Shown here one piece after another: positions 20,713 to 57,524 of a stretch of 64,000 bases of DNA. The notes below the pieces were generated by a model. It was not told the origin of the DNA. It did not search any database and saw only the letters and a list, made by a program, of their open reading frames with translations. Location of the stretch: NCBI RefSeq assembly GCF_030144855.1, contig NC_082721.1, positions 32,550,001 to 32,614,000 on the forward strand. Reading direction: 5' to 3'. Source of the DNA: Hypanus sabinus (Eukaryota). Positions within the stretch are counted from its first letter, which is position 1; each line of letters starts with the position of its first letter. Both the position numbers and the translations under genes were made by a program.

Positions 20713-21069
20713 CGTTCAGTGGCCACTTTATTATGTACCTCCTACACAGTGGCTAGTGGGGTTATATTTGTGGTCTTCTGCTGCTGTAGCCCATCCATTT
20801 TAAGTTTCAACATGTGAGTACAGGGATGCTCTTCTGAGACTTATGTGTGAAAATACCAGGAGATCAGCAGTTTCGAAGGCACTCAAACCACCCTATATGG
20901 CACCAACAATCATTTAATCAAAGCCATTTCTTCCTCATTCTGATCCTTGGTCTGAAAAACAACTGAACCTCTTGACCAAGTCGGCATGCTTTGAGTTGCT
21001 GTAACATGATTGGCTGATTGGATATTTACATTAACAAGCAGGTGAACCTAATAAAGTTGCCGCTGAGTG
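20713..21069. mobile_element. Non-autonomous Tc1-like element
   Basis: TIRs tcagtggccactttatta / taataaagttgccgctga with TA on the left; same family as 52567..53038. Confidence 0.75.
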
Positions 21070-22523
21070 TTTGTTACCACATACTGTCTTGAGATTAATT
21101 TTTTGCAGGCATTTACAGAGAAAAAAGAAGTACAATAGAATTTATGAAAAACTGTAGATAAACAGACAAAGACTGACAAACAACCAATATGCAAAAGAAG
21201 ACAATCTATGTGAGTATCAGTAACACTGTCTCCATGAAATCTTACAAATGTATTAGTAGAACAGACAACATATAAGTAAATATACGTATAGTATTGTTTA
21301 CCTGGGAATCAGTGAAGAATCCTGGAGCTTCTAATATCCCATATACTGGACAATGAAGTCCATTGACAATGAGGTTAAGAACTTAATGTACACATGGTAC
21401 TCTGTAAACAAGGGCATGAAGTGGCAAAATTAATGAAGATTTCATCCTACATGTCTACGTTGGTTGAGTAAGTCCAGCAAATTCACAGTTAATCCTGGCA
21501 AGCCTTAGGCACCAATTTTAAACCAAGGAAGACAAATGAAAAGTATAGCACAAAATGTTCTCCTAATAGAAAGCCAAGTATTCTATACTAATAGAAAACA
21601 GCACAACGTGGCAATCCAGTCTCAAACCATCTATATTTGTGATTTTGCTAGTTACAAAAAACAGGATTTCTTCATTTCATATGTTGAATGCATTGTTTCA
21701 TTTTAGAGCAAATATCATTGTAAAAATAAAGGGTAAAGACGTAGATTCCAAGAATAAGGCCGCATGCGAGTGCAAGGAAGTCAATAGAAAAGGCACAAAC
21801 ACTTACGTAACTTCATGGGATAAAGGATGTAGTCTTTAATGAAATAATATCAAAATTACAAAACTATTTTAATTCAACACCATCAAAGATTCTAGAAAGC
21901 TTCATGTCTCAAACTCAGTAAATAAGATCAGTTATATCAATTACTGTTGCAGAATTGTGAAAAATCTGTTGTGACATTTCAGATCTGGCCTGTTTCAGTT
22001 GTAAACGGCAAGATAAGTTTGTGTACAAACTAACTGTTAAGCAGTCTAGTCTGTTACTAAACACAGTAAATCTAATATTTAAGATCCTAATCCAGTGAAA
22101 ATGTCAAGGGTTTTTCTCTTATAGAACAATAGTCTAAGCATGGTACATGGACCAATGGCAGGAATAATGGCAAGAGGCTGAGTCAAGTGAGCATGGCTGA
22201 CAAAAAAAAGAAGTCTTGGAAGGAAATCTTCCCACCATCATAACAGGTATTACTCAATACAAATGTCAGAGCAGCAGGATTATTTAATTACAGAAAACAA
22301 GATCACAAAGCCTTAATATGCAGAGTTAAATAACGTATTGGAATCCATAGCCAAGTTGTGCCCTAGTAGGAAAACAATTGCCAGCTAAAAACCGCAGAAG
22401 CCAGGTTTATAGATGGATGAGCATTGTGAGAAACACCTCCTAAATTGCACCCACTATGCTAGTAGTGGTAAAATCAGCCAGTATGAAGTTAACGTACAGC
22501 ACAACTGTTTTCCCTTGGAACAT

Positions 22524-23516
22524 CCTAATGAACCACTGTAAACTCTCTGCACTGCTACTCCTCGGCTTGTCAGCTGTTGGGGCTGCAGTTGCCTTCAGCC
22601 TGTGGGCCCGCAGGAAAAATGCCAGGAAGGACCCCTCACAGGAGCAGCTGAACTAGGAGCAGATGCAGCCCAGCAGGAAGTTTGGGGAATGGTGCCCAGT
22701 GTTGAGCGAATGGAAGCTGATAGCTGGAGATGCTCTGGTCTAGTAGTCATAACCAAGAGAGAGCTGGAGGCTGGAAGCTCAGATCCAGAGGTTAGAGAGT
22801 CAGAACGTGAAATGGGAAATCTGTGTCCAAGTGAGAGTAACCTGGATTTACAGGCAGATTATTCAGAGCTCAGCACTGGGAATCTGAATACAGAATTGGG
22901 GAGCCAGAATATTGGGGCTGATAAAAGGGACGAAGGAAAGCAGCATGGAATTAGTCCTCAGGAACAGCCAGATGGAAAGCCAGGTCCTGAGCCAGCTCTC
23001 GGAAATTTTCTTCCAGAGGTGGCCAGCCCAACAAGAACCCAAGTGGGTAAAAATGAGAATACCTGGGGTAAGAATATGATAAATGGAAGCCACAAAGAAG
23101 GAATGGTTGCAGTGAAGAAAATGGAAAATGAAAACAAAGAATGTAATTGTCACAGAAGAGAAAGTGAGATGTGAAAGTGAGGATTAAGCAGTGGGTGGTG
23201 AAGAACAAGTGCAGAATGATGAAGAGAGCCCAGTTTGTGGGTCAGGTGACGCCCCAATGGTGCTGACGGGAGAGGGAAGAGCACCGTTGAGCAGAAGACT
23301 TGAATTTGTAGGAGGAAGGCCAATATTTAAACGAAGGAGGTCCATGGATGTGAGATCAGCGGAGTACAGGAAGGTACTAAGGAAGAAGAATTCAAGAGGC
23401 AAGAGAGGACAGCCAAGAAGAGGTCGAAAATTCAACAGAGATGTGGAGAGGCAGAACACAGAGATGAGGGAGTGGATTTTACATTTTGTAAAGTGCTGCC
23501 CGAAGATACGACAATA
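22524..23516 (+). pseudogene. Unidentified gene-like fragment: N-terminal signal-anchor followed by Glu-rich region, frameshifted
   Basis: ATG at 22528 MNHCKLSALLLLGLSAVGAAVAFSLWARRKNARK; overlapping long ORFs 22602-23174 and 23191-23517; purine-rich, coding-like composition unlike the AT-rich flanks. Confidence 0.45.
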
Positions 23517-25795
23517 GGATGTGCTGGAGTTCTTGGAAAGCATCAAGTTGGATAAGACGCGGGGACCGGAGGAGATGTACCCCACTCTACTGTGGGAGGC
23601 AAGGGAGGATATTGCTGAGCCTCTGGTGATGATCTTTGCACCATCAATGGGGATGGGAGAGGTTCCGGAGGATTGGAGGGTTGCAGATGTTGTTCCTTTA
23701 TTCAAGAAAGAGAGTAGAGGTAATGCAGGAAATTATAGACCAGTGAGTCTTACCTCAGCGGTTGGAAGTTGATGGAGAAGATCCTGAGAGGCAGGATTTA
23801 TGAACATTTGGAGAGGTATAATATGCTTAGGGATAGTCAGCATGGCTTTGTCGAGGGCAGGTTGTGCTGTACGAGCTTGATTGAATTTTTTGAGGATGTG
23901 ACTAAACACGTTGGTGAAGGAAGAGCAGTAGATGTAGTGTATATGGATTTTAGCAAGGCATTTGATAAGGTACCCCATGCAAGGCTTATTGAGAAAGTAA
24001 GGAGGCATGGGATCCAAGAACTTTGCTTTGTGGATCCAGAACTGGTTTGCTCACAGAAGGCAAAGAGTGGTTGTAGACGGGTCATATTCTGCATGGAGGC
24101 AGGTGACTAGTGTGCCTCAGGGATCTGTTCTGGGACCCCTATTCTTTGTGATTTTTATAAATGACCTGGATGAGGAAGTGGAGGGATGGGTTAGTAAATT
24201 TGCTGATGACACACAGGTTGGGGGTGTTGTGGATAGTGTGGAGGGCTGTCAGAGGTTACAGCAGGATATTGATAGGATGCAAAACTAGACTGAGAAGTGG
24301 CAGATGGAGTTCAACCCAGGTAAGTGTGAAGTGGTTCATTTTGGTAGGCTAAATGTGATGGCAAAATATAGTATTAATGGTAAGACTCTTGGCAGTGTGG
24401 AGGATCAGAGGGATCTTGGGGTCTGAGTCCATAGGACGCTCAAAGCAGCTGCACAGGTTGACTCTGTGGCTAAGAAGGCATACGGTGTATTGGCCTTCAT
24501 CAATCTTAGAATTGAATTCTAAGAGAGGTAATGTTGCAGCTATATTGACACTTGGAGTACTGTTCTCAGTTCTGGTCGCCTCACTACAGGAAGGATGTGG
24601 AAGCCATAGAAAGGGTGCATAGGAGATTTGCAAGGATATTGCTTGGTTTGGGGAACATGCCTTATGAGAACAGGTTGAGTGAACTCAGCCTTTTTTCCTT
24701 GGAGCGACAGAGGATGAGAGGTGACCTGATAGAGGTGTATAAGATGATGAGAGGCATTGATCGTGTGGTAGTCAGAGGCTTTTTCCCAGTGCTGAAATGG
24801 TTGCCACAAGAAGACACAGGTTTAAGGTGCTGGGGAGTAGGTACAGAGGAGGTGTCAGGGGTAGGTACAGAGGGAATTTCATCAGTCACTGAAAGTAAGC
24901 ATGCAGGTACAGCAGGCAGTGAAGAAAGCTAATGGTATGTTGGCCTTCATAACAAGGAGAGTTGAGTATAGGAGCAAAGAGGTCCTTCTGCAGTTGTACA
25001 GGGCCCTGGTGAAACCACACCTGGAGTATTGTGTGCAGTTTTGGTCTCAAAATTTGAGGAAGGACATTCTTGCTATTGAGGGAGTACAGCATAAGTTCAC
25101 GAGGTTAATTCCCAGGATGGTGGGACTCTCATATGTTGAAAGATTGGAGTGACTGGGCTTATATACACTGGAATTTAGAAGGATGACAGGGGATCTGATT
25201 GAAACATAAGATTATTAAGGGACTGGAGACACTAGAGGCAGGAAACGTTTCTGATGTTGGGGGGAGTCCAGAACTAGAGGCCACAGTTTAAGAATAAGGG
25301 GTAGGCCATTTAAAACGGAGTTGAGGAAAAACTTTTTCACCCAGAGAGTTGTAGATCTGTGGAATGCTCTGCCTCAGAAGGCAGTGGAGGCCAATTCTCT
25401 GGATTCTTTCAAGAAAGAGATGGATAGAGCTCTTAAAGATAGCAGAGTCTAGGAATATGGGGAGAAGGCAGGAACGGGGTACTGATTGTAGATGATCAGC
25501 CATGATCACAGTGAATGGTGGTGCTGGCTTGAAGGGCCGAATAGCCTACTCCTGCTCCTATTGTCTATTGTAAGTTTTTTATTCAGAGAGTGGTGAGTGA
25601 GTGGAATGGGCTGCCGGCAATGGTGGTGGAAGCGGATACGATAGGGTCTTTTAAGAGACTTTTGCATAGGTACATGGAGCTTAGAAAAATAGAGGGCTAT
25701 AGGTAAGCCTAGTAATTTCTGAGGTAGGGACATGTTCGGCACAACTTTGTGGGCCGAAGGGCCTGTATTCTACTGTAGGTTTTCTATATTTCTAT
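23517..25795 (+). mobile_element. CR1 LINE family A (RT to 3' end), interrupted by a second CR1
   Basis: RT motifs incl. VSKFADDT; 3' UTR resumes at 25571 and ends ttctatatttctat. Confidence 0.92.
24881..25570 (+). mobile_element. CR1 LINE family B 3' fragment nested in family A
   Basis: QVQQAVKKANGML..LEYCVQFWS; distinct 3' UTR ending ctcctattgtctattg. Confidence 0.88.
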
Positions 25796-28700
25796 AACAT
25801 TGTTATGGATATTGTCACAGCTTCTGATTTCATACAGATATGGCCGGATTAGCTACAAGCTCAACAAGGTGTCAGTAGCAAGAAGCACATTGAAGTTAAG
25901 AATGTATTCTGGAAAGACTGAAAATAGTAGGACAAATGAAATTTATAGTCCTCCATAGTGGTTAAAAGGCAAAATTATCAATTATATTTGCTGATTATGG
26001 GAACAGACCACTTTTCCAAGGTTGAGAAACTATTGAAAAATTATATTTGATATGAATACTTTACAATTATGTTTAAAGAGGCTTATGGAAGATTTTGAGG
26101 ATATATTTGAGGAATCATACATAGACCATACAGGGCAGTAAACTCACATGCATTAAGCCAAATGCCAAGCTGATCTATTGTAAACCTAGGCCAGCACGGT
26201 ATACACTAAAACTCAGGTAAAAGAAAGGCTAAATAAGCTGGAACAACAGAAGATATTAGTGGAAGTGTGATGGAAAGATTGGGCAGGTGTACAACAAGCA
26301 GTATCTTTAGCACACACCTCAAGATTTGTATACTGAAATGACAGGAGCTGAGGTCTTTCCTATGGTACAGCTTTGTTGTACCTATACCCAACTTAATGTA
26401 GACAAGGGAATCTAATACTACTTTACAATCAATACCCACAAGAGATTTTATTGTAAACCAAACCACCATATGTGATAAAGTAATCCTTATAAATATTCTA
26501 GGTGACAATGAACAAGTCACTGCAGAGGGCCAGAATTATTTACCAATCGGGTTGACACTCGAATTGAAACAATAAAGGAAGAGCAAAACATTTGGATATT
26601 TGAAGAAGTGTTTAAACTATTTTCATCATCATAATGTCAAGCCTAACAAAGATCATTTTGCCTCTGGGCAGAAAGAAGCAATATATTTAAGTCAGCAAAT
26701 AGATGAGAAGTTGCTATTGTCAGTTCAAAAGAAAATCACCTCTGCATTGATGGAAAGTAATTATGAAAATGTTAGCAAGTAATCAATAGTACAGAGGCCT
26801 CTCTATTTCTTATGAATGCACTTCACATTCACAAAAATTATACCTACAGTTATTTTGCATTAGCCACATTTTACATGCAAACTTACCATTAAACAAAAGA
26901 AGACATGGCTTCTAACAGATGGAAGAAATATCAAGAAGTAGGAAAAACTATAATTATGTATAATGTTGCTACATTACCATATGCAATCATAGAATGCTAG
27001 GATTTTTGCAGATTATTTTATGGGATTCTTTAAATAAAGTTTGTGCTAAATGTTAATTATTTCACATTTGATTTATCATTTGTACAAAAAACATCCACAC
27101 ACTATCCTTATGTATAGTTGAGGGTTGTGCAATTCTGGAAAGACAGCTGTGAATGATGTTTTATTTATTAGATCCATCAGGAGAAAAAGCAAAAGTCTTG
27201 ATATAATAATTTAATATGACATAATTAATTGCTGAAATATTTCTGATATGCTAACCTACAAATGAGAGTTGATAGTCAGAAGTTAACAAAACTGTAAAAG
27301 TTCATGAAATCCAGGAAAAATAAGTTGAGCTTCATAACACAAACTTAGTGAGCTGAAAGGCTTCTTTCAATGTTGTATGACCATTATTATTTTATCATAT
27401 TAGATTTATGAATATTCTATGTTGTATTTAGTCTTACAGTCAGTAATTATTATCAATTCATTGAATAAAAAGACAAGCTAAAGGTTTAAAAGTTCAAGGC
27501 AAATTCTGAAATTCATCTGTGATTACTTCTGAGAATATTGATGGTGTTCTGTTCCTTTTTATAAATTTTATGCTATAGATCAGATACTTAGTAGATTAAA
27601 TAAATTAAATAAATCCATTCTCAAAGCCAAAACAAAGTCTATGCCAAAAATGTGTGCCCTAAGTATTGTATCCAAATATTGTTGTGCATTGTATCCAACA
27701 ATAACAGGAGACCTGTGCAGGAAAGTTTTTAAAGTGGAAAAGCCATTGCATTGAGGCAATTCCACTCTTGCCCTCGGAGGTCTGGGGCCAGTGGTACAAG
27801 TAGTTATCTCAAACTGGGGTTTTCCTTGTTCCAATCACTGACCATGACTTCTGTATCTTGTCGTGCCCTCCACTCTCCACGAAGCTTCATGGATCTACCT
27901 TCTTAGCCATTGGATCTCACTGTTGATCTTATCCACCCAGTCTACTGGTGCTGACTTCACATGCTAGGACAGGCGTGTCCCTATCTCACTGGGGTACATG
28001 CCCTCACCTGCTTTATCCTGCCTGTTGAAGCATTGTACCGGATTGTGGGTGCTGTTACATACAAACTGCTACTTGGAGCCATAGATGAGAGCTGAGTTTC
28101 TGGTGGGGCCCAAAGGTGAGTGAACCGCTCCAGAGTAGACATGAGGTGCTATCCCTCCCAACACACCCCATACACCCCTCCATACATCTAATTAAGAATT
28201 ATTTTGATGAGGATGTTAAGAAATGGAAGATGAAATAGGTTAGACCACTGAAATTTCAACCCATTTAGGTGAAAGGTTTGTCTAACATAATTGTAATCTT
28301 TAAAGTTGAGTAAGTTTGGACTATTAATTAAGTCAATATTTAGAACTTTCAATAAAGATACAAAAGGGGGTGTAAGAAAAAGGAAACCAATAATGCTGAA
28401 GAGGGAGTAGATTAATACTAAATGTGTTGTTTGTTTATTTATTTATTTGAGATACAGCATGTAATAGGCCCTTCTGGCCCTTTGAGCCATTTATATATAT
28501 GCAAGAAATTCTGCAGATGGAGGAAATCCACAGCAACATACTCAAAATGCAGGAGGACACCAAAGAAGGGTCTTGACCTGAAAGATCAACTGTTTCCATG
28601 GATGCTGCCTGACCTGACCTACTGAGTTCCTCCAGCATTTTGTGTATGTTGTTTTGAATTTATGTATTACTGGATGGCAAAACATTTGGTATCTGTTTCA

Positions 28701-45579: not shown

Positions 45580-45801
<222 letters not shown>

Positions 45802-45968
45802 TGAGGACCTTCTTTTGTTCATGTCTTTCTCTGCTTTGTCTCCCTATATTCTTAGGCCAAGGCCTACTTTGTTTCCACAATTATCAGTGAACTTTCCAGA
45901 CTTCTCTGATGCCTTTGTATACCCAATTTACAGGAAATCAAAGAAGGTTAGCTTAAGTATATACTTCT

Positions 45969-47940
45969 TGAGAGATAGGGCAGTGACAGGGGACTCTATA
46001 GTTAGAGGGTCAGATGGACGATTCTGTGCACCCAGGAAAGAAATGCGGATGGTAATTTACCTCCAAGGTGCCGGGGTCCAGGATGTTTCTGATCGCATCC
46101 ATGACATCTTGAAGTGGGAGGGAGAACAGCCAGAGGTCGTGGTACATATTGGTACCAACGGCATAGGTAGGAAAAGAGAGGAGGGCCTAGAAAAAGACTA
46201 CAGGGAGTTAGGAAAGAAGTTGAGAAGCAGGATTTTAAGGGTAGTAATCTTGGGATTACTGCCTGTACCACGTGACAGTGAGTATAGGAATAGAATGAGT
46301 TGGAGGATAAATGCGTGGCTGAGGGATTGGAGCAGGGGGCAGGGATTCAGATTTCTGGATCATTGGGACCTCTTCTGGGGCAGGTGTGACCTATACAAAA
46401 AGGACGGGTTGCACTTTAATCCGAGGGAGATTTGCTAAGGCTACTGGGGAGAGTTTAAACAAAAATTGCTGGGGGTGGTAACTGAAGTGATGAAGGGAAA
46501 TATTGGCTCACAAATAAGGGTTGGAGACAGTGCAAAAGGAAGGATAGGCAGGTGATAGAGAAGGAATACGTTCAGTCCGATGGTTTGAGATGTGTCTATT
46601 TTAATGTAAGGAGTATCATGAATAAAGTGGATGAGCCTAGAGCGTGGATCAGCACTTGGAGCAATGATGTCATGGCCATTACAGAGACCTAGATGGTGCA
46701 GGGGCAGGAATGGCTACTTCAAGCGCCAGGCTTTAGATGTTTCAGAAAGGACAGGGAGGGAGGCAAAAGAGGTGAGCCGTTGCACTGTTGATCAGGGATA
46801 GTGTCACGGCTGCAGAAAAGGAGGAAGTCATGGAGGGATTGTCTACGAAGTCTCTGTGGGTAGAAGTTAGCAATAGGAAGGAGTCAATAACTCTACTGGG
46901 TGTTTTTATAGACCACCCAATAGTAACAGGGACATCAAGGAGCAGACAGGGAGAAATATTCTGGAAAGGTGCAATAATAACAGGGTTGTCGTGGTGGGAG
47001 ATTTTAATTTCCCACATATCGATTGGCATGTCCCTAGAGTGAGGGGTATAGATGGGGTGGAGTTTGTTAGGTGTCTTCTGGGACCCCTACTCTTTGTGAT
47101 TTTTATAAATGACCTGAATGAGGAAGTGGAGGGATGGGTTAGTAAACTTGCTGATGACACAAAGATTGGGTGTGTTGTGGATAGTGTGGAGGACTGTCAG
47201 ACGTTACAACAGGGCATTGATAGGATGCAGAACTGGGCTGAAAAGTGGCAGATGGAGTTCAACCCAAATGAGTGTGAGGTGGTTCATTTGGTAGGTCAAA
47301 TATGATGGCAGAATATAGTATTAATGGTAAGACTCTTGGCAGTGTGGAGGATCAGAGGAATCTTGGGGTCCGAGTCCATAGGACACTCAAAACTGCTGCA
47401 CAGACTGACTGTGGTTAAGAAGGCATATGGTGCATTGGCCTTCATCTATAGGAAAGATGTGGAAACCATAAAAAGTTTGCAGAGGAAATTTACAAGGATG
47501 TTGTCTGGATTGGGGAGCATGCCTTATGAGAATAGGTTGAGTGAACTCAGCCTTTTCTCCTTGGAGCGACGGAGGATGAGAGGTGACTTGATAGAGGTGT
47601 ACAAGATAATGAGAGTCATTGATCATGTGGATAGTCAGAGGCTTTTCCCCGGGGCTGACCTGCATGAGAGGGCATAGTTTTAAGGTGCTTAGAAGTAGGT
47701 ACAGAAATGTCAGGGATACATTTTTTACGCACAGAGTGGTGAGTGCATGGAATGGGCTGCCAGCGGCGGTGGTAGAGGTGGAAACGCTAAGGTCTTTTAA
47801 GAGACTCCTGGATGGCTGCATGGAGCTTAGAAGAATAGAGGGCTATGGGTAAAGCCTAGGTAGTTCTAAGGTAGGGACATGTTTGGCACAGCTTTGTGGG
47901 CCTAAGGGCCTGTATGGTGCTGTAGGTTTTCTGTTTCTAT
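45969..47940 (+). mobile_element. CR1 family A: ORF1 SGNH esterase domain + endonuclease, internally deleted into the RT C-terminus and 3' UTR
   Basis: GDSIVRG, HIGTN, DGLHFN (ORF1); VVGDFNFPHIDW (EN) joined to LGPLLFVIFINDL at ~47075. Confidence 0.92.
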
Positions 47941-48199
47941 AGCATAGCTCTGGTGTCCCAAGAGCTCTCCAACCAGGAAGGAGAATGACATACATTAACA
48001 TAGAGAACTGCCTAGCCTTTGGGACTGCTCCTCCTACCTGTAGTGATTGCCCAGTTAGGTTTCTGTTGAAGCAAGAATATTATAGAACTCTTCATTTCAA
48101 AAACAATCTGAGTATTCTGGTTGGGGCCATTAGCTGACCAATGGATGATTGAAGTGAAACAGAATTGGTGAGATTGGGCTGGGCTTTTAAGGTTCAGGG

Positions 48200-54865: not shown

Positions 54866-57524
54866 ATATAACCATATAACAATCACAGCACAGAAACAGG
54901 CCATCTCGGCCCTCCTAGTCCGTGCCGAACTCTTAATCTCACCTAGTCCCACCTACCCGCACTCAGCCCATAACCCTCCACTCCTTTCCTGTCCATATAC
55001 CTATCCAATTTTACCTTAAATGACACAACTGAACTGGCCTCTACTACTTCTACAGGAAGCTCATTCCACACAGCTATCACTCTCTGAGTAAAGAAATACC
55101 CCCTCATGTTTCCCTTAAACTTCTGCCCCCAACTCTCAAATCATGTTCTCTCGTTTGAATCTCCCCTACTCTCAATGGAAACAGCCTATTCACGTCAACT
55201 CTATCCCTCTCAAAATTTTAAATACCTCGATCAAATCCCCCCCTCAACCTTCTACGCTCCCATGAATAGAGACCTAACTTGTTCAACCTTTCTCTGTAAC
55301 TTAAGTGCTGAAACCCAGGTAACATCCTAGTAAATCGTCTCTGCACTCTCTCTAATTTATTGATATCTTTCCTATAATTCGGAGACCAGAACTGTACACA
55401 ATATTCCAAATTTGGCCTTACAATGCCTTGTACAATTTTAACATTACATCCCAACTTCTGTACTCAATGCTTTGATTTATAAAAGCCAGCGTTCCAAAAG
55501 CCTTCTTCACCACCCTATCTACATGAGACTCCACCTTCAGGGAACTATGCACTGTTATTCCTAGATCTCTCTGTTCCTCTGCATTCCTCAATGCCCTACC
55601 AGTTACCCTGTATGTTCTATTTGGATTATTCCTGCCAAAATGTAGAACCTCACACTTCTCAGCATTAAACTCCATCTGCCAACGTTCAGCCCATTCTTCT
55701 AACCGGCATAAATCTCCCTGCAAGCTTTGAAAACCCACCTCATTATCCACAACACCTCCTACCTTAGTATCATCGGCATACTTGCTAATCGAATTTACCA
55801 CCCCATCATCCAGATCATTTATGTATATTACAAACAACATTGGGCCCAAAACAGATCCCTGAGGCACCCCGCTAGTCACCGGCCTCCATCCTGATAAACA
55901 ATTATCCACCACTACTCTCTGGCATCTCCCATCTAGCCACTGTTGAATCCATTTTATTACTCCAGCATTAATACCTAACGACTGAACCTTCTTAACTAAC
56001 CTTCCATGTGGAACTTTGTCAAAGGCTTTGCTGAAGTCCATATAGACTACATCCACTGCCTTACCCTCGTCAACATTCCTCGTAACTTCTTCAAAAAATT
56101 CAATAAGGTTTGTCAAACATCACCTTCCACGCACAAATCCATGCTGGCTACTCCTAATCAGATACTGTCTATCCAGATAATTATTAATACTATCTCTAAG
56201 AATACTTTCCATTAATTTACCCACCACTGATGTCAAACTGACAGGTCTATAATTGCTAGGCTTACTTCTAGAACCCTTTTTAAACAATGGAACCACATGA
56301 GCAATACGCCAATCCTCCGGCACAATCCCCGTTTCTAATGACATCTTAAAGATCTCTGTCAGAGCTCCTGCTATTTCTACACAAACTTCCCTCAAGGTCC
56401 TGGGGAATATCCTGTCAGGACCCAGAGATTTATCCACTTTTAAATTTCTTAAAAGCGCCAGTACTTCCACCTCTTTAATTGTCATAGGTTCCATAACTTC
56501 CTTACTTGTTTCCCACACCTTACACAATTCAATATCCTTCTCCTTAGTGAATACCGAAGAGAAGAAATCATTCAAAATCTCTCCCATCTTCCTTGGCTCC
56601 ACACATAGCTGACCACTCTGATTCTCTAAGGGGCCAATTTTATCCTTCACTATCCTCTTGCTTTTAATATAACTGTAGAAACCTTTCGGATTTACTTTCA
56701 CCTTATTTGCCAAACCAACCTTGTATCTTCTTTTAGCTTTTCTAATCTCTTTCTTAAGATTCCTTTTACATTCTTTATATTCCTTGAGCAATTCCTTTAC
56801 TCCATGCTGCCTATATCTATTGTAGACATCCCTCTTTTTCCGAACCAAATTTCTAATATCCCTTGAAAACCATGGTGCTTTCAAATCTTTAACCTTTCCT
56901 TTCAACCTAACAGGAACATAAAGATTTTGTACCCTCATAATTTCACCCTTAAATGATCTCCATTTCTCTATTACATCCTTCCCATAAAACAACTTGACCC
57001 AATCCACTCTCTCTAAATCCCTTCGCATCTCCTCAAAGTTAGCCTTTCTCCAATCAAAAATCTCAACTCTAGGCCCTGTCCTGTCCTTCTCCATAATTAT
57101 ATTGAAGCTAATGCTATTGTGATCACTGGACCCGAAGTGCTCCCCAACACATACATCTGTCAGCTGACCTATCGCATTCCCTAACAGGAGATCCAACACT
57201 GCCCCATCTCTAGTCAGTACTTCTATGTATTGTTGCAAAAAAACTATCCTGCACACATTTCACAAACTCTAAACCATCCAGCCCTTTTACAGAATGAGCT
57301 TCCCAGTCTACGTGTGGAAAATTAAAATCTCCCACAATCACCACCTTGTGTTTACTACAAATATCTGCTATCTCCTTACACATTTGCTCTTCCAACTCAC
57401 GCTCCCCATTAGGTGGCCTATAATACACTCCTATCAGTGTTACTACACCTTTCCCATTCCTCAATTCCACCCAAATAGCCTCCCTACAGGAGCTCTCTAA
57501 TCTATCCTTCCAAAGCACCGCCAT
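54866..57524 (-). mobile_element. Relatively young CR1 LINE (family C), 5'-truncated in the endonuclease domain
   Basis: Long ORF2 pieces of 104, 378, 232 and 78 aa (GDFNFP, SKYADDT); 8-nt tail repeat (gttatatg)n. Confidence 0.95.

Follow-up and report, generated by a model that had tools for sequence, protein, structure and literature searches.

A decayed PLCD1-like first exon joined directly to a 5'-truncated CR1-like LINE in Hypanus sabinus: a candidate template-switch chimera

The stretch of DNA analysed here, hereafter the window, comprises 64,000 nucleotides (nt) of the Hypanus sabinus genome (NC_082721.1, positions 32,550,001-32,614,000). Coordinates are those of the window unless prefixed L001 or L002, which denote genomic DNA of Mobula hypostoma and Mobula birostris respectively, about 61 kb around the PLCD1-like gene of each species. 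Between 22524 and 25795, the window carries a block made of two parts: a pseudogene fragment whose homology shows it to be a decayed copy of a PLCD1-like gene's first coding exon, most of which it covers (22524-23516), and a 5'-truncated long interspersed element (LINE) that fits a CR1-type element (23517-25795), with a fragment of a second LINE nested inside it (24867-25574). Both parts, like all the features described below for the block and its flanks, are read on the plus strand, and purine and G>C skew run on continuously from one part into the other.

The donor of the first part was identified through an exhaustive phmmer search over 1.84 billion representatives, in which the segment had a single match, XP_062905177.1 (E 9.5e-39, 58% over 175 residues), a Mobula hypostoma protein annotated as '1-phosphatidylinositol 4,5-bisphosphate phosphodiesterase delta-1-like'. 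This protein has a 342-residue N-terminal extension followed by PH, EF-hand, X, Y and C2 domains, and at the start of the extension stand the hydrophobic anchor and basic cluster also seen in the window segment. In M. hypostoma, a single exon (L001 10001-11026) that has a GT donor site encodes the extension, and the PH-domain exon lies 6.3 kb further on. The segment aligns by blastn to L001 10013-10768 (73.4% nucleotide identity over 790 nt), inside that single exon, and by tblastn it covers residues 17-296 of the protein, spread over three frames. In the full alignment, it spans the ATG to about codon 313 of 342 and ends 87 nt before the donor site of the exon; the 3' part of the donor is missing. 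Among protein collections, this N-terminus was found in the proteins of the two Mobula species only.

Several details of the coding sequence agree with the first-pass annotation, which had been made from the letters of the sequence and had described an unknown membrane-anchored protein fused to a CR1 LINE. The start codon is located at 22528, 4 nt past the boundary claimed there. The translation gives an anchor remnant of 22 uncharged residues (22543-22608) and then the basic cluster RRKNARK (22609-22629), a stretch that aligns as a whole to residues 6-34 of XP_062905177.1. The frame breaks after the anchor, as had been reported, and coding-like sequence goes on in two other frames. Relative to the Mobula exon, seven indels have lengths divisible by three, and three others, of 1, 2 and 11 nt, account for the frame breaks; the segment also holds several stops. 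Differences from Mobula are even over codon positions 1-3 (0.26, 0.26 and 0.28) and so provide no handle for dating.

Other identities proposed for the segment did not hold. The first-pass annotation had seen a loose resemblance to signal-anchored proteins such as STBD1 or AKAP1, which is not borne out: Pfam found no domain, be it CBM20, KH, Tudor or any other, in the three open reading frames (ORFs) of the segment, and no homologues emerged other than the PLCD1-like proteins of the two Mobula species. STBD1 had been entertained as a candidate in its own right, given an anchor combined with an 'EVWGMVP' motif that resembled the Atg8-binding site of STBD1; it was dropped when the motif proved to sit in a 21-nt insertion with no Mobula counterpart, and it is also ruled out by the homologues, which are PLCD1-like only. 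A derivation from a transposable element gag or ORF1, named at the outset as the finding that would overturn the cellular origin, was pursued with a negative outcome: the segment is unique in the window, where no second copy of 22524-23516 was found, and it maps to the first exon of a gene in two species. The CR1 ORF1 present in the window encodes an esterase and has no similarity to the donor segment. The last 60 nt of the segment were considered as CR1 ORF2 (a 'SVFT..ED' motif), and this too was dropped, as they align with the PLCD exon of Mobula and differ from the sequence that a real CR1 copy carries there. A word-index protein search with the 190-aa ORF came back blank; being restricted to matches of 105-332 aa, it carries no weight. 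An exact-ORF look-up in public assemblies had nothing on record.

The LINE part begins with a decayed ORF2, 5'-truncated so that it starts just upstream of the reverse transcriptase (RT) domain (23517-24866; Pfam RVT_1 at 23769-24285). It belongs to a family, here called family A, with 85% identity to window 2852-1845, 84-90% to window 47076-47705 and 79% to Mobula L001 54214-52877. The 3' untranslated region (UTR) and tail of the element (25575-25795) are 82-89% identical to window 47721-47953 and to Mobula L001 32579-32352. They lack poly(A) and end in two TTTCTAT-type units (25779-25795) that are common to three other copies. The tail ends at 25795, the equivalent of the endpoint of a Mobula copy of family A, and the 3' edge of the block is therefore well fixed at 25795/25796. 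In a sister copy, which shares 82-90% identity with the focal copy over its 3' part, ORF1 (45731-46435) encodes a GDSL/SGNH esterase (PF13472, E 2.4e-11), as fits an element of the CR1 type; the focal copy itself is 5'-truncated and lacks ORF1. In the copies at 57480-55200 and 46991, visual reading also placed motifs of endonuclease type ahead of the RT. Folding of the CR1 tail did no better than shuffled sequences (z -0.49), and an Rfam search over 21-27 kb found nothing.

The element had been described at first as a 5'-truncated CR1 ending in its normal tail. The truncation, the RVT_1 domain and the tail end are all borne out, but the LINE is interrupted: 24867-25574 is occupied by a 3' fragment, about 700 nt long and with its own tail, of another CR1-like family (77.5% identity to L001 1587-903), and family A sisters are contiguous across the insertion point both in the window (47705/47721) and in Mobula (52877/52879). 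This nested fragment, in the same orientation as its host, entered family A later than the main event or independently of it. Its first 10 nt (GGTACAGAGG) match a stretch of the host CR1 lying 25 nt upstream, and no clear target-site duplication is visible around it.

Two further CR1 copies in the window bear on the state of these families. The copy at 45731-47953 has an intact-looking ORF1, and its ORF2 skips from an endonuclease-type motif to mid-RT at about 46991-47100, an internal deletion. The copy at 55200-57480, on the minus strand, is longer and belongs to a CR1-like subfamily further removed from the focal copy, with which it shares 65% nucleotide identity; it has a 366-codon stop-free stretch across the end of the endonuclease, the linker and the start of the RT.

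Donor and LINE meet directly. Homology to the donor reaches about 23514, and Mobula CR1 copy L001 54214->52664 aligns from 23517 on. The junction is pinned to 23515-23517 because this Mobula copy keeps CR1 ORF2 sequence further upstream, which the focal copy lacks; no filler separates the two parts, and microhomology could extend over 2-3 nt at most. Visual reading found no convincing splice-site features there. From 23191 to 23772, the frame of the CR1 RT is also open through the final third of the donor fragment, with one stop at the junction; this shared open frame is probably due to chance in purine-rich sequence.

The parent gene does not lie at this site. No other PLCD exon was found in the 64-kb window by tblastn, and for this reason the segment is a dispersed partial copy rather than the gene itself. 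Homology to donor intron 1 or to the promoter was likewise not found in the window, and comparison of the window with the 2 x 61 kb around the Mobula genes revealed only repeats in common and no synteny. One of these, a short interspersed repeat at 20748-21210, lies 1.3-1.8 kb upstream of the block and recurs in or near Mobula intron 1 (L001 4465-4626, 11162-11221, 12232-12282 and 13404-13475); it is read as a common repeat and not as a trace of shared locus history.

Target-primed reverse transcription starts at the 3' end of its template. A piece of host mRNA that lacks its own 3' end, as this one would, is thus not an ordinary processed pseudogene. The most economical explanation is template switching by the CR1 RT, and we infer from it an RNA origin of the donor part and a single event. 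RNA of a CR1-like LINE would have been copied by target-primed reverse transcription from its own 3' tail, the end of which now lies at 25795. After about 1.57 kb, just upstream of the RT-coding region, the RT would have left the CR1 RNA and continued on a PLCD1-like mRNA, entering it some 940 nt into the coding sequence and proceeding to, or near to, the 5' end of the message. The product would then have been sealed into an old decayed repeat, yielding a 5' piece of host mRNA followed by a 3' piece of LINE that was presumably non-functional as a gene from the start and has gone on decaying; the second CR1-like fragment would have entered the CR1 part later. A switch of the CR1 RT onto a cellular mRNA had already been suggested by the first-pass annotation. 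The sense host fragment joined directly to a truncated CR1 with an intact 3' end agrees with that suggestion. For the block as a one-step chimeric retro-insertion of this kind, we estimate roughly an even chance.

Several observations weigh against this explanation, beginning with the ends of the block. AACAT is indeed present at both 22519-22523 and 25796-25800, as first reported, and the second copy adjoins the CR1 tail as a candidate target-site duplication that is not significant alone. In shuffles of the two 90-nt boundary zones, exact matches of at least 5 nt occurred on average 6.7 times (P(>=1) = 0.999). The pair is within chance, its 5' copy may be derived from the donor, and it is no evidence by itself. 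The sequence upstream of the ATG is the reason for suspecting the 5' copy: in an ungapped comparison anchored on the ATG, the window and Mobula agree at 16 of the 27 positions from -4 to -30 (P about 3e-4), and an end-anchored score of the same similarity gives P about 7e-4 for a match 17-27 nt long. This match includes GGAACA at the same offset, overlapping the 5' AACAT. Because the upstream zone, AACA included, still resembles Mobula, the 5' boundary is uncertain within 22497-22524, and the edge zone (22497-22523) may be target DNA, the end of the donor 5' UTR, or a microhomology between the two. The donor copy would start between 4 and about 27 nt upstream of the ATG. The 5' AACAT could possibly stem from the donor 5' UTR, from microhomology used in joining, or from a true target-site duplication beside a chance upstream similarity. 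With shared 5-mers expected by chance and the 5' copy standing in a Mobula-like zone, the original reading of AACAT as a target-site duplication is not sustained.

The flanks likewise offer the one-step explanation no help. The left flank (21961-22496) is very decayed, with a zinc-knuckle-like motif, and may be the gag-protease region of an old long terminal repeat (LTR) retrotransposon; the right flank (25801-26600), also decayed and with broken frames, has protease-like and Ty3/Gypsy-RT-like motifs. On this motif-level, visual reading of the translations, the flanks may together be a very old LTR retrotransposon. Pfam found no retroelement match in eight flank pieces, and the flanks are not confirmed as one interrupted element; no LTR pairs were detected in 12-40 kb, and comparing the flanks by tblastx with the window and the Mobula locus gave nothing. 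The initial proposal that removal of the block rejoins a Gypsy protease is accordingly left with its continuity unproven. The identity of the parent presents a further difficulty. The donor gene, which had been left unnamed, is now PLCD1-like by homology, but no parent was located among H. sabinus proteins: outside Mobula, no protein is more than 64% identical to the Mobula PLC core, in a collection that includes Hypanus sabinus. Finally, the whole donor part lies within one exon in both Mobula species, so that the absence of introns is uninformative on RNA origin.

The strongest competing explanation divides the block into two separate events, in which a PLCD1-like exon copy, derived from RNA or DNA, and a CR1 insertion into or beside it arose in either order, the downstream part of the copy being lost. 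Such a history suits a region that has taken several insertions, including the LINE nested in the CR1, and a block around which no significant target-site duplication is found. It demands coincidences, however, in that two independent insertions would have to share their orientation and meet without filler. The donor piece would also have to begin at the start of a coding exon, with no intron or promoter sequence, and everything 3' of the junction would have to have been lost, alignment and visual reading having found no exon remnant past the CR1 tail. Taking both sides together, we regard two events as unlikely.

The anatomy of the block would be the same if no switch had occurred and the fusion had existed beforehand in a transcript. 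A 5'-truncated CR1 would then have been inserted in sense within the first exon of the parent, a paralogue or a pseudogene, and a promoter-driven transcript ending at the CR1 tail would have been retrotransposed, a form of read-through or 5' transduction that respects the stringent recognition of CR1 3' ends (PMC5470649, PMC3747384). Possible sources exist in Mobula, where diverged PLCD-like fragments that could be paralogues or pseudogenes flank the gene on both sides. Yet neither Mobula species has a CR1 at the corresponding point of exon 1, and the lack of convincing splice-site features at the junction, noted above, also speaks against this route, which we consider distinctly improbable.

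Capture at the level of DNA, with a genomic PLCD1-like piece serving as filler in the repair of the 5' end of a truncated CR1, draws on the similarity to Mobula genomic sequence that runs 17-27 nt upstream of the ATG. On visual reading, Mobula has an AG exactly 4 nt before the ATG; were this a splice acceptor, the upstream stretch would be intronic, which would favour a genomic source. The same stretch may instead be plain 5' UTR, no intron 1 sequence is present, and filler of 1 kb is generally unusual, so that this origin appears very unlikely. Least probable of all, and barely credible at present, is a multi-copy chimeric element family in which the fusion arose once elsewhere and spread by means of its CR1 tail, as SINE (short interspersed element) families do arise from CR1 tails (PMC5729268), given that no second copy occurs in the 64-kb window, nor in the 2 x 61 kb of Mobula DNA beyond the exon of the gene.

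The search for the donor of this putative template-switch product also drew attention to the Mobula gene, a PLC-delta paralogue that is annotated in Mobula only and is predicted to carry a membrane anchor at its N-terminus. In the PLCD1-like models of both species, the first exon (L001 10001-11026; L002 10001-11434) encodes the predicted anchor, the basic cluster and about 300 acidic low-complexity residues ahead of a complete PLC-delta. In M. birostris, it contains an in-frame 408-nt tandem duplication (L002 10013-11176) that adds 136 residues and is absent in M. hypostoma. A membrane-tethered PLC-delta would be unusual, and the gene models are predicted. Within its PLC core, the Mobula PLCD1-like protein shares only 64% identity with PLCD1a from Mobula and dasyatid rays, and neither Hemitrygon akajei nor Hypanus sabinus has an annotated protein closer than PLCD1a. 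The PLCD1-like paralogue may be lost, decayed or unannotated in stingrays, though the window keeps a copy of its first exon.

The significance of a host-mRNA head on a CR1 tail lies in the 3'-end specificity of these elements. Stringent recognition of their own 3' ends is commonly given as the cause of the low number of retrogenes in CR1-dominated genomes (PMC5470649, PMC3747384). If the template switch is true, it would represent a route round this stringency, in which the RT begins with its own RNA and moves to another template afterwards. One could speculate further that the CR1 RT of rays repeatedly jumps onto host mRNAs and thereby moves 5' exons, here an anchor and a start codon, in a genome whose main LINE makes no ordinary retrogenes; that the present copy is also a possible fossil of a membrane-anchored PLC-delta paralogue; and that the anchor exon of Mobula might have arrived in the same way. 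We consider this wider picture decidedly doubtful. One dead copy alone changes little, and a genome-wide tally of junctions between host exons and CR1 would quantify how often a stringent LINE moves host exons.

Comparison with known systems places the block with the template-switch chimeras of other LINEs and with the tRNA-CR1 fusions behind certain SINEs. It is like a classical processed pseudogene in being a dispersed, decayed copy that contains exon sequence only, but it lacks the 3' end of the donor and a poly(A) tail and ends instead in a LINE. Bipartite chimeric retrocopies produced by template switching of LINE-1 (L1), among them U6-L1 and mRNA-L1 fusions, have reportedly been described by Buzdin and colleagues. 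The resemblance to the L1 chimeras lies in the layout: in both, a 5'-truncated LINE that keeps its 3' end is joined directly, and in the same orientation, to a 5' part that in the L1 products was copied from a cellular RNA up to its 5' end and here may have been. The two differ in that the LINE here is CR1-like and without poly(A), and in that the target-site duplication that defines the L1 products is not demonstrable. PMC4476161 is a further reference on such L1 retrocopies. Chimeras of such layout have been described for other LINEs as well, among them MGL in Magnaporthe grisea (PMC2104539). The MGL retropseudogenes provide the precedent of a non-L1 LINE to which jumps between templates are attributed, joining cellular transcripts to the 3' parts of the LINE; they involve a fungal Tad-like LINE and a non-coding partner RNA in several copies, whereas the present case is an apparently single copy of a putative piece of protein-coding mRNA in a vertebrate. 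For CR1 itself, template switching by the RT has been proposed for the heads of tRNA-CR1 SINEs such as PittSINE, in which the enzyme would leave a CR1-tailed RNA for a different cellular RNA and so give the CR1 tail a new head (PMC5729268). PittSINE is a transcribed multi-copy family with a tRNA head transcribed by RNA polymerase III, in contrast to the putative 1-kb mRNA head and apparently single dead copy described here. The Hypanus sabinus block possesses anatomical features of template-switch chimeras, namely a truncated LINE with a normal 3' end and, joined directly to it in sense, a head derived from a cellular gene, and it is a probable further case of the known LINE template-switch chimeras.

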